Source: Paraphysomonas bandaiensis
Taxonomy: Eukaryota; Protista; Chrysophyceae
Direction: 5' to 3'
DNA length: 64,000 nt
Assembly: GCA_965644295.1 (NCBI GenBank)
Contig: CBFFRP010000354.1
Coordinates: 1 to 64,000, forward strand
The position numbers were made by a program, and so were the translations under genes. The stretch's first letter is position 1. The number at the start of each line of letters is the position of its first letter. Positions 1-62,676 of the stretch are shown one piece after another. The notes under the pieces are model-generated. The model did not search any database. It saw only the letters and a list, made by a program, of their open reading frames with translations, and was not told the origin of the DNA.

Positions 1-53
1 ACACGAACCTGTCTGCCATGAATGTCTGTTATGCTTGATTACATGTACGTACG

Positions 54-905: not shown

Positions 906-1084
906 TCTGCACGTGTTGCATCCGTGTATTCTGTGCCCATGGTCTTTTGCTTGCAGTAAAATACATATCTATTATAAATATACATTAACTATTGAAATAT
1001 ATTGTACAGATATATTTACTATTAGCATGAAAGAACCAGTGCCATGTTGAAGACCTTTATGTCCGCCTGCTGCATGCATTATGT

Positions 1085-3894: not shown

Positions 3895-4280
3895 GGTGTA
3901 TAGTGAAATGGTATATGGGTGTATAGTGAGATAGTGTAGTGATGTATAGTTAGGTGGTATAGTGGTATACAGTAGATGGTATAGTGGTATAATATAGTGG
4001 GATGGTATAGTGATGCATAGTAATATGGTATGGGTGTATAGTGAGATGGTATATGGGTGTATAGTGAGATGGTATATGGGTGTATAGTGAGATAGTGTAG
4101 TGATGTATAGTTAGGTGGTATAGTGGCATACAGTAGATGGTATAGTGGTATAATATAGTGGGATGGTATAGTGATGCATAGTAATATGGTATGGGTGTAT
4201 AGTGAGATGGTATATGGGTGTATAGTGAGATGGTATGTGGGTGTATTCTGAGATGGTGTAGTGGTGTTTAGTGAGATGGT
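3895..4280. repeat. Same minisatellite, right part
   Basis: ATAGTGAGATGGTAT units resume after the insertion. Confidence 0.93.
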
Positions 4281-4678
4281 TATAGTTCATACTTGTGAAC
4301 TGTATGTAATATATATGTGTAGTCGGTGACTTTTATTGCTGTAAAACTGAAGTAATATGGAAGAAATTAGTAAAAAATATTATAAATAATACTCTTCACA
4401 CTGTTATTAACTTCATAGTTACTTATTGTGCATAGTTATACCCTTTTCCGACCATCACCAAAAATTTCACCAGGTTTTACATCAAAACCCAGGTTTTGGT
4501 ATTACCTCGACTTATAACTAAGTTAGCAATGCTTAAGGGAGGGCCACATTGTCTATTATGATCGGTATTATCTACTTACTACTTAGGTATTAATGGCTAT
4601 AATAGCCGGAAAAGGTTCCATCAATGGTTACCAGGCCCTGGAATATTGCTGGAATATGCAGTAGACAGTAGTACAACC

Positions 4679-23215: not shown

Positions 23216-26200
23216 CTATTTTCTACTTTGAGACGATTCACCGCTCCCATGTTTCACTATCGGCGGCCCATCTACAGCAAGAGAAGACGAGGAAGAGTAC
23301 GTATCCAGCTCATAATCACGATGGGGAGGTAGAGGATCACCTTCAACGTTTCGAGGCTCATCGAAAGAAGACGACCGCACAGCACTATCATCACTCCCAG
23401 TCTCGGGGGGAGACTCGATCTCCCCTTCTGACTCAACTGCGTATGCAGGCGGAGGGGCCACCTGAGCAGCAGTCAGTCCGCCACGAGAGGCCGAAGTGAG
23501 TGAGGGCGGGAGGCCACTATCCGGATCAGAGGATTTCCAGCCGCTAAAACGCATCACGTACTTATCCCTCCATACGCCACGTGACCCAGTAGAGGGGGCA
23601 GATCCAAGACTTGCCCGGTCAGTGACATGCTCTGGAGTTTCCGTGGGAACTTCACTACGTCCCCAGGGACTCTCCGCAAGTTGGTCCAGGTTCTCCTGCG
23701 AAGGTTTCTTCGGTACCGCAAGGGGAGACGCGGGAAGAGTCGACGTTGGGGGTAGGTATGATATAGTGGCACGAGATGTGGTATTATTTTCCCCACTCTC
23801 GAGATCACCTCCACTCTCCTGTGCGTTTTCCGTTTTCATTGATACGGGGAAACGCCACGGCAGTATAGAAGATTCATTTTGAGTTGCCTTCGATTGTGTC
23901 GATGAGGGACGGCTAGGGATGGGCGAAAGAAATCCTGCCCAGCTCGTTATCGACTGTCTAAGACGACTCTCCGAACTAATAGAGCTGCTATCGTCGGCAG
24001 CCTCAGTAGGGGTATCCTCCGGCGACTCCACTGCTGGTGATTCATCTTTCTCAGTCACAGCGTTTGCAGTATTCGCAGCATTCGCAGATTCTCCACTAGT
24101 AGTATTGGAGCTAACCGACCGCCGACTATTTAACAGCAATTGGTGAAGCGGAGAGAAGGTTGATGATGAGCCGGCTGTAGACACTGAGGACATTCTCTGC
24201 CTCTTTATGTGGGCTAACTCATCCTTAATGTAGCGCACGATGTATGCAAATGTAGGTCTACGTGCCGGCTGTTCGTGCCAGCAGCGCTGGATAAGAGACC
24301 TGAAGGCCGGAGGGCATGTGCTACTGATGGCAGGGCGGCGGCCCTCACGTACAGCGTCGATTATATCGAAACGGGAGTACAATTCTTCATAGGGACGCTT
24401 ACGCTCCCATAATTCCCACAGAACCATGCCGAAGCTGTACACATCAACTTTGACGGAGTACCGTGTTTTATTTGTGGCGGTCAGTAACTCGGGTGCACAC
24501 CATGCAGTTGTGCCAAGATTGCTCGTCATCTACATGCAAACACAACAAGATAAATAGTTAAATGGTGCTATATACAAGTTAGAATGTTCTCACCAGTGTA
24601 TTAGAATTAGACAACGAGTTCCGTTCTGATCCATCTTCCTGGTTGAGAATACTCTCTCGTTCCCAAGACACATTCAAATCCTCATCAAACTTTACTGATT
24701 TCTTTGGCGCAGGTGAGTCTTCAGGTATGTCCTCTTTTCCATTTCTATTCTCTGCATCATCTACTGTGGTAGGATCTGAAGGAGGTTTATCAACTTGAGG
24801 CTGTGCACTCCCTGATGTTAATTGCTCCATCCCATCAAAACCAGATCCATCAGATTTCTCGATACCCTTCTCTATGTTCTGTATTTTCATAGGAACTATT
24901 CTTGACATCCCAAAGTCAGTCACTTTCACAACCTAATGATGGATATTACACAAAGTAGGATAATGCAGGTTACGTGTTGCATACCCAATGATCATCAACG
25001 ACGAGGTTAGAGGATTTAAGATCCCTATGACATATAGGCGGCTGATGGCTATGAAGGTAGAGCATCCCTCTTGCGGCTTGCAGTGCACACGTTAGAACCA
25101 ACTCGTATGTCCAAATCTCATCCACTACTTTATTGCTGCCGTACAAAATATCGGCTAGCGATCCTTGCTCAAGATACTCTGTGATAATGCACACAGATCG
25201 AACCACGTTTCCTGATTTCTTCTTGTTGGTATCCCTCGAGAGACTTCTATTGCGCCTGCTATCCCCAGACTCTTGCTGCCCAGGCACTACGATGTCATCA
25301 TCATCCTCGAACCCCGGAGGCGGAGCCGGCATATTGAATTCGACAATAGATACCCCCATCACCAACACAATGTTGGGGTGACGCAATCTGAAACAAAGAT
25401 TTCAAAGCAGGTCACACAGCATGTAATACGCTATACCTGCTCATCATATAGGCTTCGGTTCTGAACTCCTCTATGTCATTTTCAGTCAACTGCATAAACA
25501 CCGGTGCTCGCATCTGCTTAACAGCCACTTGTGCCCCTCTAAAGCTGGCTTTAAATACTTCTCCGAAGCTACCCTCACCAATCTTTCCTTCAAATACAAT
25601 TTCGTCGTAGTTAACAAATACATCGCGCAGTATGAGGTCCTGCTGAATAGCCTGTAAGTAGGACCGATTTTCTCCGTCAGTAGATGTATCCGCACTGCCA
25701 GTGAGAAGGCCAACACGCAGTTCCTGCAACACCTTGTTCTTTTGCTGGCGGTAGTAGAAGTAGTACCGCAAAGTGATAAGAAAAATGAGAATTAAAAACA
25801 CACCAGCTGCAATGAGTAGGTATGCGTACACGCTCAAATCAGAGCACGTAGTTCCAGCATAAAAGAAATCACAATGACACTCAAATTTCGTGTGTCCATT
25901 GCTGCTATGACAGGATCCACGGTCATTACAGCTCTGGGGGCAACAGTTGCCATCTTTCCTTTTATATGCCCCTCCTTCACAAGAATGACTCTCATCGATG
26001 CATCCACCCTTATTTAGACCACAGTATCCGCATGAGTGATTTTTGAGGCATATCCAGCACATGTAGTCTGTGTCGCTTCCTTTATTGTCATTTCCGGTCG
26101 CGTATTTTTCGAACCGAGCTTGGCATGACATTTCAGAAGTCGTGAATGTCTGGGAGTAAGGTTCATTCGCAGCAGCTGATAAGGGGATGGAAGGAAGACT

Positions 26201-29200
26201 AAATATATCGAGTGAATCTGCGTCTGTCGCTGACGAGATATCAGAAGAAGTGGATGATATTGATGTATCGAAATTCACTCCTTCAGGAAATACATAAGCA
26301 GGTACTTGCGGCGAAGGTGCCACATAACCTGTGAACTGCAAAGCCTTCCATTCAGTCGGTGTGTCAGAATCACTAGACGGTATAAAATCAGTATTGCCTA
26401 TGGTGCTCACATTAATAGTTCCCAAAAGAGTGACGTTGGTAGTCGTCGTCAGAACTGGGGTGTTGTAATTTTCATTGGAAATTGTGAAAGTCAACATCCC
26501 TGGGCTTCGCTGCACCAGAATCCCATCAATGCTAAGCGGGTTGAGGTATGAAGCTTCCTCGTGCGACAAAGCAATCAACCCTAAATTGACTACGGCTATG
26601 TAATTAGGGTTTTCTGATATAATATTAGCTGGGGCGTCGACATACATACGGCCTGTGCTAGTAATAACCATTGTGGCATTCTCATGTAATGCCACCGAAC
26701 TCAGCGCAGTAGTATTACTGGTCGGTTTGGCCGAGAGGTACAACTCGCCGTAAACGCGAAGCGTACAGCGCTCAAACACTGTTCTAGAACTGTAATCTGT
26801 CTTCTCAAGCAGCTGTATGATATACGAATCTTCATTAAGTATACCATGGTCAGTGAACCCCGTCTTTAGAGTACCATAAAAGTTCATAAATGGAATAAAG
26901 TTATCCAGGGTAACATTGGAGATATTCTTTGGTACATGGGAGCTAACGACAGACCCCATCAGTGCGCTTGAATACAATACAGTCATATTGTTAGAAAAAT
27001 AGAGAGTACTATTGACCATCACAAGAGACTGAAGTAAGAGTGACCGTAAAGGAGACTGATCCACAATCGTCACATTGGCTGCAATTCCTACCAGCACCAG
27101 GTCAGAAGTACTGATACTTCCAATGATTACTAAAGTGGGGTTTTTACCAAGGCCATTGACGCTTCCACCTTCTGAACCTTCTGTTGCTTGAACTAGAACA
27201 GTGACCAGGTCACCAGCACATATTTCATACGTGTTGTTGAATACTGGTAAATAGATAGTCGCAGACCCAGACATGACCAGAATAGCGGGGTATATTCGAC
27301 TTGAAGTATCCATCAGTAGTTGCCTATGGGAAAGGGCTACATCTTGGAAGGTGTCCGCCTCAGTAAGATGAGTTCGAAACACATTGCTAGCATCAGTTAC
27401 TTGCTCAGTATCAAAATTTGGCCACATATGCATTATGTGCTCCTCAAGGGTAGCATTCCAGAGAGTTGGAACAAGTTGACCATTATTCAGCCTTCGAACA
27501 GCGTCCAATTCTAGAAGGGTTCGATCGTGATGATACGCCGAAAAGTCCAAGTCGGTAAGATCGCAGACTGTCTGTGCGAGAAGTGCAAATCGCTCATGTA
27601 TTCTGAAAGCTTCAACGTTACTCGGAGAGTCCAGAATTGGTTCGTAGAGAGCAAGATCCATTTCACCTACATCCTGCATATCCTCGTACCCAGAACATAT
27701 GTCATCCCCGAGTCCGTTCCATGCAACATTCTTGCTGAACTTGCACTCATTGCATCCGATTCGTGACCCCTGTGAGTACATTATAGCTCCGCCAAAAGAC
27801 GATACCAGTCCCCCTGAATCTGTCATAGCCATATTGGCGTGAAATACAGTATTGTTGATAACAATACCCCACGAAGATACCCCAACAACTCCAATCCCCC
27901 CACCTTGTCCCGCGCGATATACAGTAGAGGTTGTGCACACCTCACCGCCTGCCACGTTATGGTGAAACTGACAGTCAGAGAATGATACCTCGTACGGGAC
28001 AGATTTGTCAGAGTCGGAAGCGTACTCGTAAAATACCGCCACACCACCTCCAATGCTATACTGCGACCCCCCAGCAGAAACCCAGTTGTCTTGGAAGAGA
28101 CATCGCTGAAAAATAATTGAGGAAAAGAGGACGGCGACAGCACCTCCTGATCCGCTACTAGAGTAGGTGTTGGTGCCGTAAAAACCCCGGGCGGAGTTCA
28201 ACATAAAGACAGAGTCTGTGATACTAAACTCCACTGCGTTCTCAAGACCAACCGCACCACCCGAGGCCCCTGAGTCAAACTGTCCTGAGAAAGCAATGTT
28301 CGATACAAAGAAGGAATCGGTTACATTCCCTCCTGATGACATTGCGAAAATAGCACCTCCAGTCCCACTGTAGGTCTTGGGATACACTCCCGGCTTAGGC
28401 TGCGCATAGTTCTCCACGAATCTGCACCACTCCACGTTTGCATAGGACGAGTGCCCAATAGCAATCGCCCCTCCTTGTGCCTTGAATACGTAGGAAGATA
28501 TTGCTGAGTTCTTGAGGAATGTACAGTTCCTCAAAGTTACCCGTGACGATTCCGTGAGATACACTGCCCCAGCCTTTCCGCCTTGAGCAATGTTCTTTGT
28601 GAAATGAGTATCTACAATTTCACCAACTGCAGATGTAGAAATGTAAACGGCACCACCGTTGGAAGAGAACTCAGTAAACAAGCCGTCAGATTGCACGTTA
28701 TTGGCCTCGAAGTGAGACTGAGATATGTATGTAGGAATACCGTCGCTGAAAAGTGCACCCCCGTACCCTCCTGCATTGTTGTCTCCAACACCGCGCGCGG
28801 AGTTGTTGAGGAACGTGCAATTGGAGATTGTTGATTGAATGCGTTCGTTAGAAAAGGAGTCCGAGGTTAGTATAATTGCACCACCCTCCGCGAACTACAT
28901 CACACAAGAATATCATTCTTAATATTACACAACTACAATACTGTCAATATACCTGGCTCAAATCCTTAGTAAGAGCGACATTACCAAAGAACGTAGAGTT
29001 GCGCATATACAAGGCGACGTCTTTGACGTATACTGCCCCTCCTCTTACTTCACATAGCTGATCTGATGTGCACACGTCTCCGCCGAACACCATATTATTT
29101 CCAAAAGTACACTCTTCGATTGTGGTTCCCGCCACAAGATTGAGGTTTACAGCTCCCCCCGTAAGCTGCGCATAATTGTGGTGGAACGAACTGCGCAACA

Positions 29201-29939
29201 CTGTCAAACGCGATCCACCGTTCAGATGAATGGCACCACCCTTCCCTGCCTCGTCCACATCGAAGTCGACGGCATGATCATCATCTAGATCCCCATGTGC
29301 GCGGTTGTACTCGAACAAACTATCTGTGATGGTAATACCGCTATAGAGGGATGTAAGAGCACCACCCCAGAAAACGGCCTCATTGTGGTGAAACGTACAG
29401 TCGGATATAAGTAGTGATCCTTCACCAATAAATATAGCACCACCATTGCGCGCTTTGTTGTCTACAAATACGGTGTTGTTAATTACAACTTGTGAGGCAC
29501 TACCACCGAATATTATCGCGCCTCCGTCCCCAAAAGACTGTAGACTGAGGTCCAATGCGGAGCAATTCCGTATCAAAATATTACTGATATGACTAATAAA
29601 ATAATACTCATCAGTCAAAAAACGATTTTCTTGAGAACAATGAATAACAATATCATTCGGACTTCCATTACCAATAATTTTTATGTCAGAAATGGAGGAA
29701 TTTACAGTCATTAAGTTTTCATTGCCCAATCCTGAGTACAACCCAGGCTGTAGCTGTAGGATATCCCCTGAATTCGTAATTTGATCGAATCCAGCTTCAA
29801 TTGTTGGACATGCAGTAAGTAAACTAGTCCCACATGTGTCAATAGGGGCACTAGAATTACTATCTACATATATAATAAGTCCTGTAGTGTACTGGATATA
29901 TAAACACACAATACATAAGAAGAAATATGATTGCCACAT
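23216..29939 (-). CDS. Receptor-like TKL protein kinase with extracellular parallel beta-helix (GGA/FxxN) repeats, Cys-rich/EGF domain and one TM (~2150 aa, 5 exons)
   Basis: Signal peptide; many GGAI/V plus FxxN repeats; CNDRGSC...CHCDFFYAGTTC; TM; kinase motifs GEGSFGEV, VAVK, HRDLKSSN, DFG, APE and DVYSFG. Approximate introns 28895-28952, 25388-25436, 24933-24982 and 24530-24592. Confidence 0.9.
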
Positions 29940-30143: not shown

Positions 30144-30453
30144 TGCCTGTAGGATATAATATAGAATGGAGATGCTATACGTCTGTGGTGTATGCCAACA
30201 TTAGGAAGAATACCAGAATACTGCACAGGAATACAAGAAGAAAACCATATGAATAATGAATAAGAATATGAGTGTAGTCTATGTATGTGTGTATTCATGA
30301 CTGTATCCATCATATATACAGTACTGTATATTTGTACTCCACGGGCGGTCCATGGCACTGCCTTAATAAGGACTGTGCATTGCATTCATATGGACCATTG
30401 CATAAGATATATACTAAACACTAGTACATGGCTATTCTCTATTGATAATTGCT

Positions 30454-31464
30454 ATGAAGCCAGTGAAATATTACAGATATCGTAAAGATAATGACCACCG
30501 TCTTAGTTTATTAAAGAAATCATGGTTTTGTGGCAAGGATTGTCTTGATATCGGCTGCAATGAAGGACAGTTCACTCTTGAAATTGCAAAGAAATTTGCC
30601 CCTAGAAGTATATTAGGTATAGATTCAGATAGTTCACTTATTGACTTAGCTTCTACTCGAATGAAGAGACTAGTATCAGCCCATGCACCTAAGAAAAATA
30701 CACCTAGTGCTACAGCTTTAGTTCCACGGATAGTACAATCCCAACTGAAGGCTACTAGCTCTCAATCGTTTCCGCGCAACTGTTCCTTTGATACCGTTGA
30801 TGTTCTTTCTGTGGATGTTACCAATCATCGGAGGTACGATACAGTGTTGTGTCTGAGTGTAACTAAGTGGGTGCAGCTTAATCACGGAGACGATGGTTTG
30901 ATGCGTCTATTTAGAGTTATGTGGCAAGTACTCAAACCAGGTGGCATTGTTGTTCTGGAATATCAGCCTTGGAAATCTTACGTCAAAAATAAGAATTCAA
31001 GTGATCAATGCAGAGAAAACTTCTCACAGTTACAAATCAAACCGGAGGATTTCGAGAAAATCCTCATTCAGGATATTGGGTTTGATATTCAAGAACGCTT
31101 AGGTGTAGATGTAAATGAGGCGAAAGGTTTCAACCGTCCTATTCTAGTGCTGCAAAGACCTCATAACTGTAAGGAAAAAGTTAGACCTTCTGTTTCAGAG
31201 GCAGATAACTTAGTAGACGGCGATCAAAGTTGTGTGGAGGTGATAAACAATTCAGTGGGTGGCGATCGAATTGGCGTGGAGGTAACGGCTGAGAAAAGAA
31301 AGAAAAAACGAAAGAAAAGGAGTATTGTAGATAGTGTTTCTGCTGAAGAAGGTTCTGAGAAGAAGAAAAGGAAAAAGAAAAAGTTACTTATGGTATCTCC
31401 TCCAGATGATGCGACGGAATGGTGTCGTCTTCTTGAGAATCAGACGACAGGAGGAGTTCAATAG
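30454..31464 (+). CDS. MEPCE: Bin3/MePCE-family RNA methylphosphate capping methyltransferase
   Basis: CLDIGCNEG (SAM motif I), YDTVLCLSVTKWVQLNHGDDGL, LEYQPWKSY, GFNRPI and a Lys-rich NLS-like tail. True start uncertain. Confidence 0.88.
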   Translation: MKPVKYYRYRKDNDHRLSLLKKSWFCGKDCLDIGCNEGQFTLEIAKKFAPRSILGIDSDSSLIDLASTRMKRLVSAHAPKKNTPSATALVPRIVQSQLKATSSQSFPRNCSFDTVDVLSVDVTNHRRYDTVLCLSVTKWVQLNHGDDGLMRLFRVMWQVLKPGGIVVLEYQPWKSYVKNKNSSDQCRENFSQLQIKPEDFEKILIQDIGFDIQERLGVDVNEAKGFNRPILVLQRPHNCKEKVRPSVSEADNLVDGDQSCVEVINNSVGGDRIGVEVTAEKRKKKRKKRSIVDSVSAEEGSEKKKRKKKKLLMVSPPDDATEWCRLLENQTTGGVQ

Positions 31465-38853: not shown

Positions 38854-41099
38854 ATGATGACTGACCAAAACAAATTGATTGAATTATTCACATTATGCAC
38901 TATAGGAACTAACAGTGTTGTGTATTTTCCAGAAGTAGCTAAATATTTTTGGCCTGTATTAGACAATAGAGTTACATTATGTGATCTATCTGGAATATTT
39001 ACTATAGCCAATCCCAAAGGATTAGATCATCTTGATATCTCATTATTCAAAGAATTTGTTGATAGTTTTTCAAGAGTAAAATATCCGGATGATGATAATC
39101 ACTTAGAGAAACTTGTGGATGATCTCATAGATGCACGAACATTAAACTACGAATGTAACAACTCTACTTTTAGACTGGCTATGAATAAAGTTGTCATGAG
39201 AGTTTTGTTGAAATTCGACTTACCTCTCAGAAGAGTATTCGCCGCATTTGCTGGAAGAGGTGGCGGAATAACATGGGAAGAGGTCAAAACGATGAGCGTT
39301 GGCATGGATGTACGTATAATACTTGCAGATGTCCTATATAGTTGACTAAGTATATAAATTTATACAGATTGAGGGATTTAATTCTTTTGCAGCTGCATTT
39401 TCTCTTGTCCCGTCGTCTTTGAGTGTGCAGGTAAAGAATTTAATGTCCTATAAACATATTAAATACGCATTTCGTGTTAGCGATGTACGACACTTGCCCG
39501 TGAAGTTTTGGATCGTTTCCCCCTCCTCAAACCTGCCAAAAATTCTACCCTTTTGTATCCCCAGGTGCAAGTATCTTTTTCTGTTGCGAGTGGCTTCGTA
39601 ATATATTCTTGTATACTAGTTTCAGTTACTGTTGTGCTTTACAGCCGAAGAATTTGCTGAGGCCAATTCTACATCCACATTACCTGTGCCTAATACTAAT
39701 GGAAAGCCAGGAGTTGCATTCGGTCGCGGATTGTCGAGACAAATCTCCAATATCCAGGAGAGGGTTCCAACACCACTAAACAAAAGCCTGGCGGATATGC
39801 TCAAGACAATCGGTATTGATATGGCGGCGTCAACACTTGCAGTGGCAGACAGTAGCGCATCTACATTGCGTCCCGCTGCTTCCGCTCCCACACGCGAGAT
39901 GAAGAAGGGGACATCTTTCCTTGAGGATTCTGGTTCTACGGTTCATACCCCATTCAAGAAACCTGGTGATTTGAATCCCACTCAGTCAAATAGTAATAGG
40001 GAGTCGATGGTATTGCGCATGGAGAAGTTATTTGACGAGGTGGATGCACGTCTGGAGGGCATGGCTAATACCGATTTTGACGATGAATTAGAGTTTGAAT
40101 CATTCCCTGGTGATGGGGAAGAGTTGGTGGAAAGGCGATCGAAGCGTATGAGCAAGCCTGTGGTGATCGGTGACTCTATTCCCCCGCCTCTTAATTGCCC
40201 TGCACAAGTGCAGCATGTACGTACCGCTGCGTTTATTTATTAATTAGTTCCTTATATTGGCATGTATTCAGTCTTTAGAGGCAGCGTTGGCTCATCATAA
40301 CCTGGGTAGCTACGAAAAATCTCTGAAGTATTTAGAAACCGCAGAAATACATCTTGTTGAAGAGGAGCGACAGAAATTGGTAACCAGGAAAAGGCAGGAG
40401 CACCGAAATTTGGCTAGCATTTCCGGTAATAGGCCTGCTGAAGGAGATATTCCGGTGGTAACAGGATTTTCAACAATGGTATGCGACCCTGAGGTCAATG
40501 AGAACGATGTTGTTTTACCTGCCGAGTCAAAGTTCTATATAATGGCTTGTAAGGGTAATGTGTACCAAAGTTGCGGCGATGACGAGCAGTCTCTCCTGCA
40601 GTACATGAATGGGTGGGAGATCGCGAATACTGAATTCCATGGAGACTGGGAAATATTATTCGTGAACTCAATAGGACTTTTAGCGTATTATAATTTACAA
40701 TATGAGTTAGCTCTCAAGTGTTTTACAAAGGTTGGAAGATTCCGAGAGATCGAGTTCGGTGCTCGGAGTGCTGACACAGCAACATCGTGGAATAATCAGG
40801 CATGTTGCTTGTATTGTCTCGGTCGTAAAGGGGCAGCGAGAGTATTGTTTGAGCGTGCTCGAAACGTGTTCGTAGAGTGTCTTGGGAATCGGCATCCGAG
40901 ATCAGTAGTCGCCTCAAGAAATTGTGAAAAGGCTAAAAAATGTCAAAATACTGTAAGTAGTCAAAGTATGAAGATGGGGCTTCCGATTCGTGGGGATGCT
41001 AATAGATTAGTAATGGGAAATGATATCGGTATACAAGGTCTACCACCAATTAATCCTGGTGATAAACTTGGATGGTCAAAAAATAGAGATTCTAAATAG
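38854..41099 (+). CDS. TPR-repeat protein (kinesin-light-chain-type TPRs), multi-exon
   Basis: Consecutive ORFs linked by short GT-AG introns. TPR motifs ALAHHNLGSYEKSL, NSIGLLAYY and DTATSWNNQACCLYCLG...LGNRHPRS. Confidence 0.75.
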
Positions 41100-43257: not shown

Positions 43258-46200
43258 CTAACTTGAAATTTTATCGATATAATTCGACGTCTCGATATAC
43301 TTGAGATGCAAGCTAAGGTAGCCCGTGGCAACTCCAGTAATTTCGAGCGCTTTTGTCACCATTAGCTCTTGTTTCTCAAATTCAATGACCTCAGATAGAG
43401 ATATGACAACACCTCCAAGAATAGTACTGCCGCCAAAGTTGTTCTTAGATTTAACTTTCACTCTGAGATTATCAACGCGTTGTTCATACGCATTCTCTAC
43501 CAATACAAACGTAACACTTTCTTCATACACCGGGTTTCGAGTTCCTCGAACCACTTTCGTGATTCTCTTGATAGGACCAATTGTAAAAGTTAAATATGGT
43601 CGCATTGACGTCGTCCCAATTGGTAGCTTTAGTTCTTCGCAGGAAATGCGAGAAATTATAAGAATTCCATATACTTTACGTGTACTTGGACCTTGTACAC
43701 AGCAAGACATCACATCAGAACTATTACTATCTTCTCCGTCAACATGATAGCTGCTGAAATCGTACGACTGTTTCAATATAGAATAATTGGATTTGTAATC
43801 CACAACAGGTATAAGAGATTCACTGGTAATAATGTCTTCATTCAGAATGCTCAGTGGGAGGCTGAAGAGGATGTCCTCAACAGTGCGGCTATCGATATGA
43901 ACATTCTGAAGTCTAAAGTATGTCACGGCTACTCGAATGGAACCAGACTTCACTTTTGCTAGTTTCAGATCAAATTCTTTCGTAACACCATGCTTCATAT
44001 ATCCCAAATCAAGGTCAGCACGTCCAAGAAAATCAGGGGCAGATCCAACATCGTAATCGAAAACCGTAAGCTCGATATGTTGGCAGGCGGGGTCATAAAC
44101 TGGAAAATCAAAGTATTCATTGCTCCAAACGGGGTTAAGATTTTTGTATATGACTTCTGTGCGCACGACCTCATCAAGGTAGCTGATCTCAACAAAAGGG
44201 TCTGAAGTGGTCAGGTCACCGATCTCAAGATCACTGCAGCTGAGGATTTGTATCGTCAATACGCCATGTGGAGTCTCCACAAGCATTCCACCCTCCGAAA
44301 CTCCCTTAATTAATGGGATTTGCATCCACTTGGGATATAGCATCCGCGTTGCCAAAGTCTGTTTAATAACCTAAAAAAGCAAAATTAAACCCAAAATATC
44401 TAATATATATTGACAACCTGGGCAATCGCAGGGCCAAACCCTACTTCTTTTGAATTATCTTTTTTCAAATCAAGGTCGCCAAATGTAACAGATACATCAA
44501 CGTCTGGTTTTTTCATGAAGGTTGCCTTGGCAACTTTATATGGCATGGGACTGTCTAGATCATCTGATGAAACGACTTCCACCCGCACTGTTCCAGAGAA
44601 ACGGAGATTGTATATATCAATACTGAGTGTCTGACCTAATAGTTCGACATCACAAGTGATAAGTCCATCAGATATCCAATTGAACTCCAAGTTCAATTGA
44701 ACCTGTATATAGCGCAATAAGCAGCACATACTTGCACCAAAAAGAAACATACATTAGAGTTCCCTGGAATGGGGTCTAGTACCTCCATGGTTGAGAATAT
44801 GGGGGGGCGTGTGCCAACTGAAGCGCTCTTCATAACCATGCTGGACAGGAAGCTTGGCTTTTTTCGACTGAATATGTCATTTGCCTTCGCAATTAGTTTA
44901 GGTTCGGCGATGTCTCCTATCTTCTTCCAGGCTTGCGCCATGAGTTTGTTTATCCATTGACATTGACTCTTCCCTGAGTCTTGAGCCCAAACAGGAAGAT
45001 CTTTAACCACTCGGTGGACTAGGGCTGGATCAGATACGATTCCCATTACTACATCCCAGTCCCTCCGGTTTTTCATGTGATACACGTAGGCACAGATTGC
45101 AGTTGTGATGGGAAAGGATACATAAAAAAGCGGCATCGAAATATGCATGAATATGCACGGCACAAGCGACATCCCAAAAAAAAATAAGGGGGTCATTGCC
45201 CAGCCGCAGTTACTGTATAGAGCAGATATTTTGGCTGCTGCGATCTTTTCACCGCCGTCAGTGTCATCATTCGAGGAGTGTACAAAAGAAATTTCTTGAA
45301 CCGGCTTCGATACGTGCTCTGTATAGAGCTTTCGTCGAGTCCTGGCCTGCTCATTATTCTGCCAATATACACTTAGTGGATATAAAATTTCAACAACATA
45401 CACATACAACTTCCTGTCTTTTCTGATCAACCTTAACTTTTACCCAATGAGGTATGTCAGGTAAAATCGCACCGATTATTCCCCGCGCTACAAGCAATAT
45501 ATGCTCCATAACAACTGCGCAGAGTACGAGCGACACGAATTCACCACACATGGACGAGATACCACCCGGTACATAGCGATGTCCATGCCTTGATGCCAGG
45601 AATGCAATAAAGCAATTGACAAATATACCAACAATATTGATTCCCTAACCACATATACTTATAAAGTGAAGAGCTCTGCATGATGTACGCACCTCCATGA
45701 CACTCATCCAGGGCTCCATAATATTGCCGACCCAGGCACTCTCGTCCAGTACTGGGCGTCGACACCTCACCAGTCGGTGCAGGTCTCCACCAATCTCCCT
45801 ACTGCATTGCAATGTTGCCAGCAATGGGGCGAGCGGATATACACCAGAAAAACAAACAACTGTTGAGTACAGCAGAATTTTCGAGATGTGACTAGCGCCA
45901 ACGTCATACACCTACAAAAGAGCAATCTAACGACAATAACCTCAGCAAAAAGGCGGTCTCACCGGAGCCTTCCCTTCTTGGTAGAGAAAACTTTCATAAC
46001 TATTAGTATCCGTACAAAATGACTGTTGACTTAGGCTATCATCATCCCCGCAATTGAGCGGCATCCTCGAATACCCTATGGGAGCACGTTCTCGGGATTC
46101 TGGAGAGGACATACTGGAGCCATTACGATCTCCGTTCCAGAAGGCAGAGAATTCATCATCGCTATCGTCGTCAAGGTCATCACCATCTTTGCGTCGCTTC

Positions 46201-47864
46201 CTCCAGGCAGCTCTCCGAAACATTGCCGGCCGTTGCCCAGTGGTTGGTTTCGCAGTTTGTGTAGGGGGCAACTTCCGCTTTTTCGATTGCTTTGTGTCCG
46301 AAGCCTTTCCAATGATCGACTTCAGAATACTCTTCGCACCTTTGAGAGCATAGCTGCGAGGACTGTACACGTCAGGTCTCTCCACTGTGATAGTCATACT
46401 ATGTCTCCGATTTCGGTGGTTGTGTGGTGCAGAGGGGGAACCTATATACGACACAGCGGAATGGTAGACTTCCACGAAAGCGCTCTGAATCCCCTCAGAT
46501 GCAGTGAAAAGAGAATCATCACTGACAGGCAGGCGGTCACGTAGCTGCCAAAAAAAATCAAATATGCACAGAACGGAGTCGATACGAAAGTACATTTTTC
46601 TATCGTACCTCATCTGCAACGAACATACATGACAACACTACACCGACGCTCTCAAAGTCTCGTATCCAGAGGGTGAGGTACAACAGTCCGGCAAATCGGT
46701 TTACCAGTTGAACTATGCAACTAATACATACAAGCCTATCGTACCGCTGGCTAGATGTTTGCACCGGTTCCATATCTGCTATGCACTCACACACGCGAGT
46801 AAGTCGCGGCTCCATTGCAGGAACTAGGAGACTAGAACGGAGTAACACATGAGCGCCAATGAAATCTGTATGCAAAACGCACCTATAAAGCACAAGTGGA
46901 GCTTTGCTGATGTAAAGAACAGTCCCAATCCACCGCACGACATATTTCTTCATCAATAGTGACATCAATATAATACATACTTAGCTCCTACCTGTAAACC
47001 CAAGCACATGGATACCGCATACACTGAAGACACCAAAGAGGTCACGCACACAACCACCACCAATAAACTTCCTGGTATAGCATTCTTAATCGCCTGAAAC
47101 TTAGAAGCAGGCTGCTCCCACGTCGCTGCCGCTGTAGCGTGTGAACTAACAGACTCCCAAGAAAAAACAGTGGTGGCCATATGTTGTCTCCAGTTCTTGA
47201 TAAAAGCAATACTCCAGCCACTCATTAGGAGACAGGCGGCAGGTACAAATAGAGAGTCTGCAGAAAAGAAAAATAACTGATAGAGAAACAGAATGAGACC
47301 TAGCCAGCAAGGGACATTTAAAGAAAAAGAGAAAAATTTCAGCCACGTGAAGTAGACCGCTATAGATGGGCCGAAGTATGAGCTTATCTTTGCGTCAGAA
47401 CTTGAGATGGCCACTTCAGCCAGGTCGCTGCGTCTATGAAGCAGGAAACATTCTGTGTACTCGAATCCGGCCCTCGTGATAAGATCCATTGCTTGACATG
47501 CAAGAAAAGTACGTTGAGGTGTACTATATTTATCATATGTGACAATAGGAAGGGCACATTGCACTGCGAGTTTCACAATCAACTCCGATGACAGTCCAAC
47601 GCTTACAAAGCAATGATCACTGTCTTCATCAGAAACACATGACCCAATCAAAAAACCTCTTTCAACTAAACGAGTTGTTACATTACTAACATCTTTTAAC
47701 ATAATTCCACATATGGCAATTTCAGGACGTAATGTATGATCTTCACGACAGTCGGGTGGACGTTTCGCAAATGCAGTATCTCGTTTGGGTTGTTTTGAAG
47801 TATTGTAAATACTCATTATAATACAAGTCACTATACCAGAGGCTAAGAATAGTGGTAATGGCAT
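43258..47864 (-). CDS. Predicted anoctamin/TMEM16 - SMP - C2 - C2 fusion protein (~1400 aa)
   Basis: Exons 47864-46992, 46947-46609 (probable internal 51-bp intron 46832-46882), 46544-45963, 45911-45693, 45644-45408, 45358-44753, 44702-44418 and 44370-43258; all junctions GT-AG and in frame. Anoctamin motifs: YFGPSIAVYFTWL, YPLAPLLA..EI..D..L..RRP, EH..LPDIPHWV. SMP motifs: LPVWAQ..QWINK..W, LRFSGTVRV, FMKKP. C2 motifs: SDPFV, NLNPVW, VFDYD. Confidence 0.78.
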
Positions 47865-48770: not shown

Positions 48771-50184
48771 ATGAATACAACAAATGATACCATTACATCC
48801 AATTCATATATATATACAGTACGTGATGGTGATACACTTGAAGGTATATCAATTAAATTTAATATAAGAGGTAATATATTACGACGTATCAACCATCTGT
48901 GTGGTGGAGGACATAAACTCTATCCAGGACAAGTAATCCATACTTACATTAATATATCATACACTTATATATATATACTTATATAGATATTAAATTTAAG
49001 GGCACCATCATTACCAAACGATATCAGGTTAACATATTATTATATTATCATATGATATAAACTAGTAGTATAGTCCACTTCCACCTCTTCCTCCTCCTGA
49101 TTCCGACTCATCTGGTTTCTCATCTGAACCAGTACATATCAAAGGATCACCTATTGAAGTCACTGAAGAACCAGGAGTAGTAATGAAGCTCGTTAAGAGT
49201 CTTTGGTGGTCTGACGATGGTGGGGAAAATGCTGCTGCTGCAGAACATTCCCCTGTGGATACCTCTTTTTCTTCGTATACTGCGGAATCTCCTGTCCTTG
49301 TGCAAGACCATGAAGAAGGACATGGGCAACAAGCTGAAGTTGTGGACAATGTAGTTCTGGATGATGAATTCGATGCCGAGATCGTTTCAATGCATCCGCC
49401 TCGTACTTCTCCTGCCGCCTGTAGCATCGTCCCCTCACCCATACAAGTGGCTCCTGTTCTGGTTGGAGATGGAGCAATTCTTCGACCTGCTTTAACCGGA
49501 GCTCTTGCTAAGCATGTTCCTATTACTCTGCAAGCGGACAAATGGATTTTGCTATATAGCGTGCTCAACGATGGTGCAGATTTGACCTCATTTTATGGCA
49601 AGACTGCAGGTACACTTGCCGTTCACCGGATTATAGTAGAATATGCAATGAGATCTGACATTTTAAATCTTGTTCATATCAATTGGGTGTCGTATATTTT
49701 CTTTATCCATCGTTTTGATGTACATATATAATCTAATAGTACAGGCAATATGTACACCATTCTTGTGGTTGAGACCATGTCTGGTGAGGTATTCGGCGGA
49801 TTTGCGTCTGCCAGTTGGCATGTATCACAATCGTTTTACGGTACTGGCGAGAGCTTCATATTTTGTACCTCTTGTGATGAGGAGGGGGAGGGGGTACAGG
49901 TTTACCGATGGACAATGGAGAACGACCTTATCATGTGGAGCTGCCAGTCGCAGGTGGCAATGGGAGGAGGGGGAGACGGTTTCGGGTTCGTGCTTGACGC
50001 GGATTTTCTCACCGGACAGAGTAATAGCTGCACCGCATTTGGAAATCCGCCTTTGACCTCTAACAGAGGATCGTTCCGCATTGCTAATGTGGAGGTGTGG
50101 GGATTCGAGAGTATTGTGTCTGCACGAAAGAAGTCCCCATTACGATCCAGGATGAAACGGATCGGTGACAGAGGCCGTTTCTGA
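48771..50184 (+). CDS. LysM + TLDc domain protein (OXR1/NCOA7-like), multi-exon
   Basis: LysM: YTVRDGDTLEGISIKFN...LYPGQ. TLDc: WILLYSVLNDG, GEVFGGFAS, FYGTGESFIF, MGGGGDGFG and CTAFGNPPL. Confidence 0.88.
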
Positions 50185-51197: not shown

Positions 51198-54100
51198 ATT
51201 TTAATTGCAGTTGACGAAGTGCAGCACATGGACTGTATGACAGCATGCATCCCCTCCTTAACAATCGCAACTATTCCCATCGGAGGGCGAAATGTGGCCT
51301 GCATGTGCTCAACTCTTCCGAGTACAGCCATTAGAATAGGGGACTGTGCATAGTTTCCCTGAGTAGCTGCAATTTTTTGTCGAGTGGTAGCAATGCATTT
51401 ATCCATCAATCGTGAGAGTACAGCCATCTCGGTACTAGATGTGCATTGGTTGCAGGCAACTTCCAGATATGGGATGAGAGATTCTACTTCCCCATGTTGC
51501 AAAAGGTGAGTTACAGCCTGGCATGCATACTCGAAAGCAAGGTGGTGTGGGGCATCCTGGGCACTCATGGCATAGTGGTAGCTTAGACTGCAAACAACCG
51601 TACCAGTTAGACACGCATCACAATTTTAATTTATCCCACATTACCGGAATATATGCGGTGACAAATTATTCTTGTAGAGTCTCTGCATGGTCGATGCAAT
51701 GACTGCATGAATGGCTTGTGCGTCGCTAAAACATAAGATGAGGAAAATGAATTACGTGCTTGCAATGTAGAACCTCGGTGGCACCAAATCGTAGACATAT
51801 TTCCGTATTATTCCACTAGAAAAGCTGACGACACCATCTGCCAGAGTTACCAGAAATCCTTTATTTTCAAGTGATTGCAGACTTTTACGCAGAATAGACT
51901 TCAATTCAGGAGATATAATTTCTCTGAGTACCTCAACTGCAAACTCTTCTCCAATTATACTTGCCGTTTTAATAATCATTCGACTACTATGAGAAACTCT
52001 TTCCAGCATCGATACAATTAAGGAATTGTCTTTCAAACTCGCCACAATCTCATTGATATTATCAGTTTGTGACTCTTTGAAATAATTAACAATCTTCCAA
52101 ACCAAAAATGGGTTTCCCATAGATATTGAATTCACGGCATGTAGAGCTTCTTGTGAAAGGGTGATATTAACTTCATTCTCAACAATCGTTGATATAGTGC
52201 GATCTGACAGAGGGCGTAGAGTTAAACTATGTAAACACCCGGAATGTATGGAGCCACAAAACGCTTCAAACTCTATACAATGTCTGCAAAAACAATGACG
52301 CATACTATATACACAAGTAGGTAATATACCTAGTAGGTACATCTCTCGAAGGCAGTTTCGTCGACTTTCCTTTAGATAGCATCGATTCGCTGCTCATCGA
52401 TCGCTCAATGGAGTGATCAACAGATTCTGGAGAACCAAGAGGCTGTGTGTAGTCTTCAGTCAATGTATGTGGGTAGAGTGGAATGTACGAGCGATGAACA
52501 CGAACAGTCAAACACAACAAAGCGTTTATACCCATCGAGGCAAGTTTAGTAATAGTCTCCCATGTGAATCGGCACATGAAGTGAGCATTGTCAATCGCTA
52601 CGACAGAGATTCCAGCACTCAATATATAGTAAAGCAATTCTGCCACAATCTTTGCTCGAGATGGCGAAAGCGTCGGAGATATAGAACGCTTAATCGCCAA
52701 TTCATCTGACTCTGGAAGGTCCCAGTGCCAATCAATGCCCAGTTGATGCTGTATCAGAGGGAAAATCCACATACCTATTTCTCTTTCGGAGTGGGAAGGA
52801 AAAGCACTCTTCAACAGTTTTATAATCCCATCCTTGTCGCACAATGAACTAACAATGCCACTTGCAGCCAGAATCTCTCGGAATATTTTTCGTAGAGCAT
52901 TACTGGGTGTGGAGTCATCATCACTCACCAAACGAACAAATACAGCTGAGCGAGGGTATTCACCAGATACAGTTTCTGCGCGGTTCAGACGATTTATAAA
53001 GTGGTTCATCACATCCGTTTTCCCTGTAAAATTTACAGGTAAATAACAATTAAGACGCTAAACGTGCTCTTACCCGAGCCAGATACTCCTTTAATGACGA
53101 ATACCTCCGTACATGCTTTGACATCAGTGAAGCTGTGACGCAAAAATCGTTTTTCTCCTGTGGACTGACGGGAAAATATGGTAGGGTCATCACCGGTTTC
53201 GACAAGACTGGGCGTAACTGGCTCCGAGTCAGAGCGAGACTTCAACAAGTCTGATCCATGTGAGCCAGCAATCGAAGGAATGATCTGCACACTTGAGTGC
53301 GAGTGAGTGATGTCTGAGTGAGATATATCAGAACATCCAGATGGACAGTTTGCGATTAGGTTTAAATAAGACGCACGGCGAGAGGCAGAGACAAGTTCCA
53401 GGACATCGTTTATCTTGCGCCGCACGTACCCCTCGATACCGAGCATGACATCGTCTCTAACATCTACTGCATGCCGAGTGGGGGGAGAAGTTGAGTGGTA
53501 GCAGTGATAAACTTCTCCACTAGGAATTCCTTTTAGATGAAGGTTTTCGCAAGGGGAGGTTCGTGAAGAGATATCTAACGGAAGCTTTGCGTGCGTACTG
53601 GAGTCCATGAGGATTCGACCGTTGGCCTTGATCATTAATCGGGCAGCCAGATTTACAGATCGGCCTATGGCGACATAGTCCCTCCTGTAGTCAGTACCAA
53701 CTGTTCCACAGTATGTAATCCCAGTAGTTAGTCCAATCGATACTGTATGGTTAAGTGTGTATGATTCATTTTTCATCATAACCGCGCAGCGGAGGGCTTT
53801 AGAGCAATTGGCCGCATGGGAGGCAGTGGGTACCCCCCATAGACCTATTAAGACACATCCCTTGTCGTCAATTAGAAATTGTCGTAGAAATCCCCCGCAG
53901 TCATTCAGACATCGCTGCATAGCTATGAAAAAAGGTTGAAGAGTTTTAACATCACTGAAATCCGCGGAATTATAGCTATCGAGTCTCAGAAAGAGAGTGG
54001 TAACAGAGCGAATTTCTTTGATACCGTGTAACGTGTCGGTTCGAATGGCCTCAGCAACAGGGGCGGGCACACAGCTGATCATATCCTCCAGTGTGCAGCA

Positions 54101-55044
54101 CCCGGGCAGATCAAACTTCGGGGTGCTGTAATAGCGCTCCGGGCACTGAATATAAAAAGGATACAACATCACAGATATATATTTCGAAGGTAATATGAAA
54201 GCTTACCACAACTAGAGAGGGGTCGTACTCAACTTTATAGTACTGCTCCTGCTCACAACAATCAGTTCCACGAACACTTTCACCACTCGAAGCAACAGGG
54301 TGGGCATTAAACACAGATTTACTAGCAGTATATACATCGCCGGTGATCACAAGCTCCCGGCTACCCGCATAATTGATACCCTTGTCAATATGTTCCAAAC
54401 AAGGGCTGTTCATTATGTAAGTGCAGTGGTTATTATATCCTCCAATGAGTGCCATGCACATCTTGCCGCTGGACACCACTACATGGGTTTGAGTGCCATC
54501 CATTTCACATTGAGTGAGATGAAGTCCACAGCGCACAGCACGCAAAGAACACTCCTGTAGAGTAGACTCTTGCTGTTGTGGAAGAAATACACAGAGCAAC
54601 GAATCACCTGCGAATTCAAGAACTGCGAAAAATAAAATTAATAATTTCCAATACACAGCGACGTTACAACATACCATCACCACCATGTAAGTATATAATT
54701 TTGACAAAATTTGCAAAAGACTGGTCCGTAATTAAGCGGAGTTGATCCAAACCGACAGTTCCTTGAGAGCACAATGCACTGGACAGCTTTGTGAACCCGG
54801 ATATATCCGCCAGTAAGCAACACCCATCAAAGTATACACTCTCTCCGAGTGGTGGGAATCGACGAAGGCTACTGGGACAAAAAGATGCCCATAATTCAGT
54901 AAAACTTGCTGTATGATCTATATGATCATCTACAGTACTCATCATAGATTTAATTCTTTTTGGTGATGTGGCATAATAGCTACTTGTTTCACTAGAACTA
55001 TCATCATCATTTGATGATAATGATGTACTCCATACTCTTGACAT
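51188..55044 (-). CDS. Soluble adenylyl cyclase (ADCY10-like): tandem class III cyclase domains plus STAND P-loop NTPase, multi-exon
   Basis: LLADISGFTKLS, GGD|VLEFAGDS, RQFLIDDKGCVLIGLWG, IGRSVNLAARLM, spliced Walker A GVSGSGKT, Walker B VAIDNAH, GNPF and ASIIGEEF. Confidence 0.88.
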
Positions 55045-59259: not shown

Positions 59260-62200
59260 ATGACAACATTAAATATTGATTCATCATTACAATTAAAACA
59301 AACTGAATGGGTTGAATTATTATACTATGATGAATTCATAGTAAACAAACCACCATTAATACATTTAAATCATAGTAATATACTTTCACTTGCTTCATTA
59401 TGGTTTATGGATGGTGTGATTGGTCGCTCTATTTGTTATCCACAAAATAAAATTGAATTTTTATGTTATCAATTTATTACATCCAACTTTTTTTTAAATA
59501 TATATGCTGCTTTGTGTATTTTACAAATGACGTTTCCATTTCTTCATGAACCTTATTGTCCGTGGTCGTCAGCTCAACATGGTAATGGTGTACCGTATTC
59601 ACAATATTTGCAGTACTCTACAGCATCAATAGACATGCTCTGTGTGATGTATTTCACACTTGATTTAGTGGCTACGATATATGTCTTACGTAGAGATAGA
59701 AAAATGTTCAGGAGTGATATTTGGCTACTGGTTCGCCTGCTCTGCTGTATTTTGCTGTTTATGGAGAGCATTCTCAGGGTGACTGCATTTTATCCGTTCG
59801 ACTTCGCTCGCAGCGTAGTTCCCATCATTCTCATATCACGAAGAAAAAGTCTAAGGCTTATCATGTTGGGAGTGTTTCGTGCCACCCGAAAATGTATACC
59901 ACTTTTCCTTTTTCTTTTTACACTACTTTTTATATGGAGTTATATGGGCTATCTTATTTTTAATAACGTTGATACAAATGGCCAAGATCACTTTTCCTCT
60001 CTGCTGAAATCTTTGCGTACTTGTGTGATGTGTTTTACAGCGGCTGGGTACCCTGTTTTTGCATTGGATCCGTATTTTAAAGTAAACCCTATCTCTTCTC
60101 TTTTTTTTGTAAGTCTGGTGGCTGTCTCATGTATTTTGACTGCCCCTATTATAATATCTGTGGGGAACAGAGAATATCGCTCATATGCTGATGAAGTATT
60201 TCGTCATCAACTGCGCAATAGGAAAGAGGCAATTGTAGCAGTGCACCAAGTGCTTTCTGATATATCTGGTATCGCTGATAGCAGGAAAGGAATAGACCGG
60301 TTAGTAAGTCGTGAGACGTGGCTCTCATTCTGTTACCAGCTGAAGACGAAGTTCAAAATAAACTCTCAGTTGATAGACATGATGTTCGATACGGAGGCAC
60401 TCCCCGCTGGGAAGGATGAAGTAGGCGTCGACTGTGCAGGTGTATTTCGCCTTTGCGCCTTGTTAGACTCGAGATTTAATCTGGACTCTCGTGCTCTGGG
60501 TGGTGGAGAATTGGCAATGTCTGACGATGAGAAGGGAAATGATGGAATCGAGGAGGAACGGGTCAGTATGTGGGCACGTTGGAGTTTTGCAGATGAAAAC
60601 TTTCGGCTTTCTACAATTTCCAACAATCCCAGAAACTCATCATCTCCCCAAGGGATAGAAATGGGTCAGGTAGGAGTGAAGAATCCTATTCACATAGATG
60701 GCTCTAGCAGCAAAACCCTCACCTTCCGGAGACCAGAATCTCGGAGTAAAGGCGAACCTCGACCTTGGCATATGTGGGCGTGCCACCGTATACTACTTTT
60801 GGCAGAATATATATACCTTCTGATATATGTGTACGCAGTCAAATCTAGATCCATAATTAAATCTATCGTTTCATTCAACGTGCCGCTTACGAACCTATTC
60901 TGCTGTGAGTATTCTGTGAATGCCCTGAATGCTTGTGCCAGTATCTGCAGAGTAGTCTTAGCTATCCAACTCTTCATGATATGTAACGTAGAAAGACACC
61001 AAGGATGGTATGTATTGGGGTGGGGGTTGCAACTATTTTTTTGTATTGAAGTGTTCTTCCGGTGCTGTGCGGAGGGACTGAGGAAGTATATCAGCCGCAC
61101 GTATGCGCTCACGATTGCTGTTAACTTGGCGAGTCTGACCCTGATGATTTTGATATCTCGCATAAAGGACGATGAGAAGAGGCTAGTCAGCGCACCATTT
61201 ATAGCCCTCATCATTGTGCAATGTAGCAGATTCTTTACGCTCTTTGGGGGTATAAGCGAGACGTCGAAGATAGTTGCAGTGGCCCCGCTGTTTCTCAGAG
61301 TCTGTCTCATTATTTTTTGTACAATATATTTTTTCGCCGTCTTTGCGTACAATCGTTTTTGTAACATACTTCGACCTGAAGAAGCGCAAGGTAATATAAA
61401 ATTAGTTAGCGCTTTTCGTGTGACAATACGTATTATATCAGGCAATGACGATGTGGCTCCTAATTGGATTCAATACGAGGATCAACTCAACTTTGATACT
61501 TTTCCCAAGTCGCTGTATACATTGTTTGAAATAGCAACTTTCGGAGATTGGACTGTTGTTCAGGTTGCCGAAAAGGTGGATCCGATATCCTCTTATCTCT
61601 TCTTTTACACGTATCGACTGCTAATGACCCTCGTTTTTCTTCCAATTTTGAGCTCTTTCATTATTCAGACCTTCGTTTCTCGAAGGGAAACGATTGAGAA
61701 GACGAAAACAACCGAAAACGCAAGGGATCATGTAGAGACAGATGCCTCAGTGATATCTTCCGATGATAGAACGCCAAAGTGTGAGTCGGAGAATGCAACC
61801 AACAGGAAACCCGAAGATGGGATAAACACGCCGTCTGAAACACTTCCTTCAGTCACCCGTCTTCAATTGCAACGTGATAAATCTGCAATGAGTTCCCTCT
61901 TTGGTGACATAGATACGTCAAATGTTGAAGATCAGACAAACAATGAGGTAATTGATGTTATTCGTCATTCACAGCATGGGAATCGTACTGTAGACGATAA
62001 TGGTTTGCAAATGCGTTGCAAGTATGCTGCCGATACTGTTCATGCAGCAGTTGACTGTAGTAGCGAAGGAACACATAATTCACGTCGCCGAAATTGTAGT
62101 GATGATATAACTACCGCAAACTCTGTGCCAATATTAGACCAGAGTATCAGTGTGAGAGATATAGAAAAGCCCATTTCTTATTCTCATCGCAGACAGTCCA

Positions 62201-62676
62201 CCAGTGGTACACATAAAATTAATCCAGGTGTGCAGTCTCACCTGTTTTAGAGGAATATTTTATTTTTCTGTCAGGAAGACGACCTTCAAGACACCCGAAC
62301 AGGAGAGTATCTATAGGTGAGAAGAGTGGTCGTAGTCATGCGCTGTTTTATATATGTGCCAAACATTAGGTATAACTTCTGACCCCGTTGACTCTCAGAG
62401 TATGATATCCTTTTGGTCAGCCTCTGGCACAGGTATTTTTCACTTTTGTATATGCCAAACTTACAATAACACCTTTCAGAACGGCTGATGTCCGACATGT
62501 CCAACAAATACGGAGACGATGCCGCAACATATGCTACGGTTATGCAATTGCAGTTAAACGAGGCGAACAGACTCCTTGTAGAGGAAAGAGAGCGCAATGA
62601 AGCGCTGGCAAAGAACTTGAAAGAACTGAAAAAAGAACTAGAAGTATTAACACGAAACTTATCGTTAACAGATTGA
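59260..62676 (+). CDS. Two-pore channel (TPC)-like cation channel, 2x6TM, C-terminal coiled coil
   Basis: Two 6TM repeats with pore segments FSSLLKSL...FTAAGYP and NFDTFPKSLYTLFEIATFGDW. Probable in-frame intron ~61391-61441. The 3' exon structure beyond 62227 is approximate. Confidence 0.75.

Follow-up and report, generated by a model that had tools for sequence, protein, structure and literature searches.

A gene on the minus strand of a 64,000-nucleotide stretch of Paraphysomonas bandaiensis DNA (contig CBFFRP010000354.1, positions 1 to 64,000; hereafter the window) encodes a TMEM16 (anoctamin) membrane unit followed, in the same chain, by a hydrophobic hairpin, an SMP lipid-transfer domain, and two C2 domains. 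It was confirmed that this fusion exists as one transcript coding a 1400-residue protein. The host, Paraphysomonas, is a chrysophyte, a marine relative of the golden algae. We lean, if narrowly, towards the gene representing an undescribed protist family, mainly ochrophyte and of single origin, in which a TMEM16 scramblase is built into the same chain as an SMP shuttle and a C2 tether, so that one protein would move lipids both across a bilayer and from membrane to membrane; in one subclade, which includes the window gene, control by calcium would have passed from the scramblase to the tether. What is new is the architecture, not the fold.

Gene structure and transcripts

The gene extends from 47864 to 43258 and consists of nine exons separated by eight GT-AG introns of 44–64 bp. 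When RNA-derived contigs from four runs were aligned with the region, each of the eight introns was seen as a joint. Together, the nine exons comprise 4203 nt, that is, 1400 amino acids and a stop codon, with no internal stops. The window gene was searched exon by exon, and the joined exons were used solely to count frame, stops, and hydropathy; full-length searches and folds were performed with the database proteins P0088 (the Paraphysomonas paralog), P0008, and P0063, and with the natural cDNA locus L011.

The two halves meet at a 49-bp, phase-0 intron (45359–45407, minus strand) with donor GTATGT at 45407, acceptor TGGCAG ending at 45359, and an in-frame TGA at 45392–45390. On re-reading the sequence, the splice sites and the stop were as the initial annotation had described them, and its statement that the intron is similar in size to the others also held. 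That annotation had further proposed that splicing be looked for across 45408/45358. This joint was found in two runs. The X8 contig (4486 nt) and the X10 contig (4127 nt) both reach from the anoctamin exons through the SMP exons to the C2 exons and lack 45359–45407, the shorter flank of the joint being 236 nt. Although X8 is labelled as possibly DNA, it is cDNA-derived, because it lacks all eight introns.

In a third library (X11), the junction intron is kept and the other introns are removed, and the frame consequently stops at residue 738. The same intron-retained form was represented by a single 4673-nt cDNA, L011, over window positions 48051–43024 (minus strand), which is taken as the transcript extent; X8 covers 47956–43067. 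Since L011 covers both regions, even the intron-retained form carries both halves on one transcript. The outcome that the initial annotation had regarded as fatal to the fusion, namely retention of the intron up to the TGA together with a separate mRNA for the second half, was therefore seen in its first part in one library, while among the contigs neither a separate mRNA for the SMP half nor a separate transcript start was seen. The contigs give no proportions of the spliced and retained forms. A database protein identical to exons 4–9 (MMETSP1103, taxon 36769, Paraphysomonas, Chrysophyceae) passes the retained intron by one dropped base, which looks like an automatic frame fix. The intron-retained product (window 45407–45390, minus strand) would end in VVCVCC, which is cysteine-rich and resembles a lipidation signal, probably by chance given the GTAT-rich introns.

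Domain composition and calcium sites

The TMEM16 half is encoded by the first six exons, all features of the gene lying on the minus strand. Exon 1 (46992–47864, residues 1–291) contains the start codon, the cytosolic N-terminal domain, and transmembrane helices (TM) 1–3, as judged from a Pfam Anoctamin match (E 7e-16), the RNA joint, and the paralog model. The lumenal loop and the start of TM4 are encoded by exon 2 (46883–46947, 65 nt, residues 292–312; joints 46947/46992 and 46831/46883), and TM4, TM5, and the start of TM6 by exon 3 (46609–46831, residues 313–387; Anoctamin positions 169–230). Exon 4 (45963–46544, residues 388–581) holds the end of TM6 and a long disordered TM6–TM7 loop, first basic and then acidic, which in the paralog has a predicted local distance difference test score (pLDDT) below 50. 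TM7 and TM8 follow in exon 5 (45693–45911, residues 582–654; Anoctamin 333–392), and TM9, TM10 with its EH motif, and the end of the anoctamin domain in exon 6 (45408–45644, residues 655–733; Anoctamin 393–459). In this exon-wise search, Anoctamin was matched on exons 1, 3, 5, and 6. On the natural cDNA open reading frame (ORF) L011:188–2401, the PF04547 profile was covered over positions 1–458 of 460 (E 6e-47, 161 bits against a cut-off of 28), and the best Protein Data Bank (PDB) match of the family profile for the membrane half was TMEM16K, in one stretch (E 1e-74).

The fold was judged on a model of the paralog P0088 (residues 1–1190, pLDDT 77) and not on the window gene product. In this model, the TMEM16 helices and the disordered TM6–TM7 loop are accompanied by a hairpin of two helices, an SMP barrel, and one C2 domain. 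Its ten-helix TMEM16 fold with a cytosolic N-terminal domain aligned with TMEM16A, F, and K and fungal proteins over approximately 490 residues (Z 27–34), and E-Syt2 was matched as well. The model has an assembly artefact at residues 924–941, and its predicted template modelling score of 0.57 makes the domain packing tentative.

In the case of the second half, exon 7 (44753–45358, residues 734–935) encodes a linker, the hairpin, and the first part of the SMP domain; exon 8 (44418–44702, residues 936–1030; RNA joints and model) the SMP strands; and exon 9 (43258–44370, residues 1031–1400; domain matches and RNA joints) the SMP end, C2A, a spacer, C2B, and the stop. The SMP (TULIP) domain occupies approximately residues 861–1050 (44313–44977, across exons 7–9). 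Against Pfam, it remained under the cut-off (E 0.007–0.03), and it was established by phmmer, which led to E-Syt2 4P42 (E 7e-18), by the family profile (E 2e-32), and by structure. In its model (pLDDT 89), E-Syt2 was the top match (Z 16.9, rmsd 2.4 Å over 161 residues), the five top matches were all SMP domains, and E-Syt2, Mdm12, Mmm1, and TMEM24 outranked everything else. The family profile also matched the SMP-C2A-C2B unit of E-Syt2 in the PDB (E 2e-71), and two C2 stretches were found in exon 9 (E 5e-36). By sequence comparison, C2A (43891–44265) has its calcium-coordinating aspartates, and C2B (43261–43668) lacks them and carries a basic strand (17 K+R in 136 residues).

Approximately 40 hydrophobic residues (about 788–827; 45080–45196) precede the SMP domain and were modelled as two short helices with a central break (model helices 13–28 and 33–65). 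TMEM16 C-termini are cytosolic, and thus the stretch has to form a hairpin for the SMP and C2 domains to be cytosolic as well. From sequence and model, we infer a re-entrant hairpin that keeps the SMP domain on the cytosolic side. A type I single-pass anchor was rejected because it would place the SMP domain in the lumen. In E-Syts and tricalbins, SMP and C2 domains face the cytosol behind a hairpin (PMC7387695). In the window gene, the hairpin is neither N-terminal nor the sole membrane anchor, as 733 residues of TMEM16 precede it. The spacing from hairpin to SMP domain is only about 33 residues, so that the SMP carrier would work next to the scramblase.

Two features that the initial annotation had not described are a degenerate TMEM16 calcium site and an insertion of approximately 190 residues that forms the disordered TM6–TM7 loop. 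Ligand positions were counted from an alignment of the family profile to TMEM16K and follow TMEM16K numbering. E448, D497, E500, E529, and D533 are the five acidic residues of TM6–TM8 that we take to be the calcium ligands; the window gene departs from this pattern. E448, at the end of TM6 in exon 4, is replaced by V; in exon 5, D497 and E500 of TM7 are each replaced by S, and E529 and D533 of TM8 are kept. The third-site glutamate is likewise lost, and the polar residues of TM5 (QxxN) are kept. In most members of the family, acidic residues are kept at all five positions (for example P0025, P0036, P0048, P0063, and P0114). The paralog, P0054, and P0059 are degenerate in the same manner, and the loci L001 and L002 appear so in TM7; the long TM6–TM7 loop is common to the window gene, the paralog, L001, L002, and P0059. 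Given the degenerate site, the scramblase of the window gene is probably calcium-independent, as in yeast Ist2.

Fused relatives and selection

Fused relatives, which the initial annotation had suggested be sought in related protists, were found. With exon 7 as the sole query, 79 clusters at 50% identity were obtained. The word-indexed homolog search was insensitive (full-length P0088 returned itself and one C2 protein), and the range and counts given here are hence lower bounds. Anoctamin was present in at least 22 of 33 long SMP relatives and Pfam SMP_LBD in at least 29 of them, and in the relatives examined singly, Anoctamin always stood ahead of the hairpin, SMP, and C2 domains. Named members include the Paraphysomonas paralog, Epipyxis, Tribonema gayanum, and T. 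minus (KAG5191948.1). The paralog is 63–70% identical in most exons, and its cDNA is continuous and gap-free at the junction. At the genomic loci L001 and L002 (35–45% identity in the C-terminal half), the domain order is unchanged, and the same junction is inferred to contain a GT-AG intron in phase 0. Furthermore, several relatives are intronless single ORFs of 1350–1460 residues on contigs of 26–55% guanine-cytosine (GC) content from unrelated samples, which rules out a modelling artefact. The single chain proposed by the initial annotation is accordingly supported by spliced contigs, by the cDNA of the paralog, and by many relatives. A EukProt protein of Bolivina argentea groups with some of the intronless copies, whose origin may be foraminiferal or in an associated stramenopile.

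In SMP trees, a single branch separated the fused proteins from ten stand-alone E-Syt-like domains (support 100/96; Shimodaira–Hasegawa-like approximate likelihood ratio 96 in a second tree), and a single clade of fused SMP domains was not rejected by the approximately unbiased test (p-AU 0.31). The window gene sits on a long branch. As the sample was picked by similarity to the window gene and the trees were rooted at the midpoint, a single origin of the fused SMP domains is supported, not proven.

Both halves are under purifying selection. Between the paralogs, nonsynonymous divergence (dN) was 0.17–0.29 and synonymous divergence (dS) at least 1.4, which is near saturation, in both halves and in all exons but the loop exon, where dN was 0.48. 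All five differences between X11 and the window were synonymous third positions.

Several further observations concern the family and its relatives. The intronless fusion genes at L003, L007, and L008 (NCBI whole-genome shotgun projects JAANSX, JAANSU, and JAANSW) have conserved neighbours, namely a CH-domain gene at all three, tubulin and Tim17 pieces at L007 and L008, and an upstream P-type ATPase at L007. The hairpin-SMP-C2 module of P0081 (L012:123–4781, 1552 residues) groups with the fused family; its N-terminal 800 residues, with about seven hydrophobic segments, gave no match in Pfam, hidden Markov model, hhalign, or Atlas searches and may represent a strongly diverged anoctamin or some other membrane partner. 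P0026, P0033, and P0067 are stand-alone proteins of 1400–1520 residues with two tandem hairpin-SMP-C2 modules per chain. In one assembly, exons 7 and 8 of the paralog cDNA are joined aberrantly (L010:3009–3062): part of the intron is kept and the exon end is missing, giving two ORFs. Clusters in the ESM Atlas, which is silent on small clusters, were anoctamin-only or SMP-C2-only. Database records of the fused family carry automatic names only, one of which lists both domains (P0016).

Elsewhere in the window, the divergent neighbour of the fusion gene is a LysM and TLDc gene of OXR1/NCOA7 type (48771–50184, plus strand). An apparent receptor-like kinase (23216–29939, minus), with putative exon joins, has Chlamydia PMP/beta-helix repeats upstream of a Tyr/Ser-Thr kinase domain. 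A 996-codon ORF with two Ion_trans stretches (59260–62250, plus) is possibly a two-domain channel, and a multi-exon gene with a nucleotide cyclase domain lies at 51752–54716 (minus). Ordinary genes encode an O-fucosyltransferase-like protein (19030–20223, plus), a Bin3/MePCE methyltransferase (30442–31464, plus), and a TPR protein (40257–41099, plus). The region 53–4286 contains a 234-bp tandem repeat (53–831) and a 23-bp satellite (1083–2909 and 3895–4286), with a GC skew near 0.8.

Proposed function and comparison with known systems

We rather favour a tether at endoplasmic reticulum (ER) contact sites that scrambles and transfers lipids in one chain. The 1400-residue protein would most likely reside in the ER, where, judging from its family, a TMEM16K-like ten-helix unit would flip phospholipids between leaflets. 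Beyond the cytosolic end of TM10, the re-entrant hairpin would bring the chain back to the cytosol and hold the SMP domain near the same membrane. According to their motifs, C2B would bind acidic lipids of the facing membrane, probably the plasma membrane (PM), and C2A would contribute calcium-dependent binding. The SMP domain could then shuttle glycerolipids over the gap, with the attached scramblase refilling or rebalancing the donor leaflet. Calcium may act on both units in most members of the family; in the window gene, calcium control would rest on C2A alone. In yeast, Ist2 lacks the calcium site and scrambles constitutively, and a fusion of Ist2 to Osh6 made by engineering complements almost as well as the wild type (PMC12618243); Osh6 transfer is sustained by Ist2 scrambling in vitro (10.1101/2025.05.06.652365).

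Several points weigh against this proposal. Location, scrambling, transfer, and coupling are all inferred, and the full-length protein is backed at the transcript level; in X11, the reading frame ends after the first half. TMEM16A, F, and K and the fungal proteins were tied in Z, so that channels and scramblases cannot be told apart by structure. SMP domains exchange lipids with little selectivity, and a scramblase whose calcium site is degenerate may equally be a dead one. Moreover, a review argues that lipid exchange by Ist2-Osh6 does not require the leaflets to be rebalanced, and that proof of coupling in cells is lacking (PMC13286939).

The dead scramblase leads to an alternative that we consider unlikely, in which the TMEM16 unit of the window gene is an inactive anchor that dimerises and places SMP-C2 at contact sites without moving lipids, while canonical relatives may scramble. 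The three lost ligands, the lost third-site glutamate, the loop insertion, and the long branch are consistent with this, but Ist2 is active despite having lost the same site (PMC12618243), and the whole fold, the TM5 QxxN residues, and low dN are all kept. An ion channel, chloride or non-selective, is a still more doubtful reading; the E-Syt module would position the channel and set local lipids and calcium, as a covalent ANO1/E-Syt1 partnership. TMEM16-family scramblases pass ions too, and TMEM16A is among the tied structural matches. E-Syt1 and E-Syt2 regulate ANO1 at ER-PM junctions (PMC11982563). However, ANO1 and E-Syt lie in opposite membranes, whereas fused partners must share a single membrane; in sequence, TMEM16K, and not TMEM16A, comes nearest to the family. 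To our knowledge, the characterised non-animal TMEM16s are scramblases.

It is quite improbable that the junction intron acts as a regulated switch, its retention yielding a free 738-residue TMEM16 or a decayed mRNA, perhaps with a hairpin-SMP-C2-C2 protein of its own that starts at Met 45196, and its splicing yielding the fusion. X11 and L011 do retain this intron alone out of eight, and that Met lies directly ahead of the hairpin; against this, the contigs are silent on proportions, the same library has a mis-spliced or mis-assembled paralog junction, the paralog is spliced here, many relatives are intronless, and no second transcript start was seen. Two adjacent genes joined by gene modelling, as the two ORFs of one library's main contig (L011) and the splitting of the locus by prokaryote-style callers might suggest, can hardly be maintained and were refuted at the transcript level by the spliced joint in two runs, the continuous paralog cDNA, and the intronless ORFs in unrelated samples.

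No description of a TMEM16-SMP-C2 fusion was found in the literature searched, which for the most part did not extend to subscription journals; the papers found included none linking a scramblase to an SMP shuttle, and a TULIP review mentions neither TMEM16 nor scramblase (PMC5507252). Functional coupling of scramblases to lipid-transfer proteins at contact sites has been shown in vitro for Ist2-Osh6, though not in cells (PMC13286939). A natural, conserved fusion provides evolutionary evidence for a partnership of scramblase and SMP domain, and hints that Ist2 may pair in the same way with tricalbins, or TMEM16K/ANO8 with E-Syts. With each activity open to separate mutation in a single protein, it offers a natural test of whether flipping and carrying are coupled, and a comparison is already at hand between members that have the TMEM16 calcium site and those that lack it.

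Both halves have counterparts that act together as separate proteins at yeast and animal junctions (PMC13286939, PMC11982563). TMEM16K (anoctamin-10), an ER scramblase at ER-endosome contacts (PMC7335067), matches the family best in sequence throughout the membrane domain and shares its fold and, in canonical members, the five acidic ligands; however, it has no lipid-transfer or C2 domains, and the window gene differs from it by three lost ligands and the long TM6–TM7 loop. With E-Syts, tricalbins, and plant SYTs, the window gene shares the hairpin, the SMP domain, a C2A with aspartates, and a terminal C2 without them, with E-Syt2 4P42 as the best match. Unlike in those proteins, the module does not begin the chain but is attached to a ten-helix TMEM16, there are two C2 domains rather than three or more, and the fused SMP domains group apart from the sampled stand-alone ones. 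Yeast Ist2-Osh6/7 resembles it in having a TMEM16 with a degenerate calcium site and in bringing a tether together with lipid transfer within a single assembly (PMC12618243, PMC13286939). In Ist2, however, a long disordered tail recruits a separate phosphatidylserine/phosphatidylinositol 4-phosphate exchanger of the ORP family, whereas the window gene has a covalent SMP domain, a short stalk, and a C2-based tether. Membership in Ist2 or in E-Syt proper was rejected, as the C-terminal half is a folded SMP-C2-C2 unit without the long disordered tail with Osh6 site and basic tip, and TMEM16 stands ahead of the hairpin. ATG2 with ATG9, TMEM41B, or VMP1 likewise pairs a lipid-transfer protein with a scramblase (PMC13286939), but as separate chains of unrelated folds and with bulk-flow bridges in place of SMP shuttles. 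In protists, PfTUPA fuses a membrane lipid-moving domain to a carrier of the TULIP superfamily (10.64898/2026.09.11.750981), but its membrane part is PqiA and not TMEM16, its BPI-like domain faces the lumen, and it has no C2 tether.

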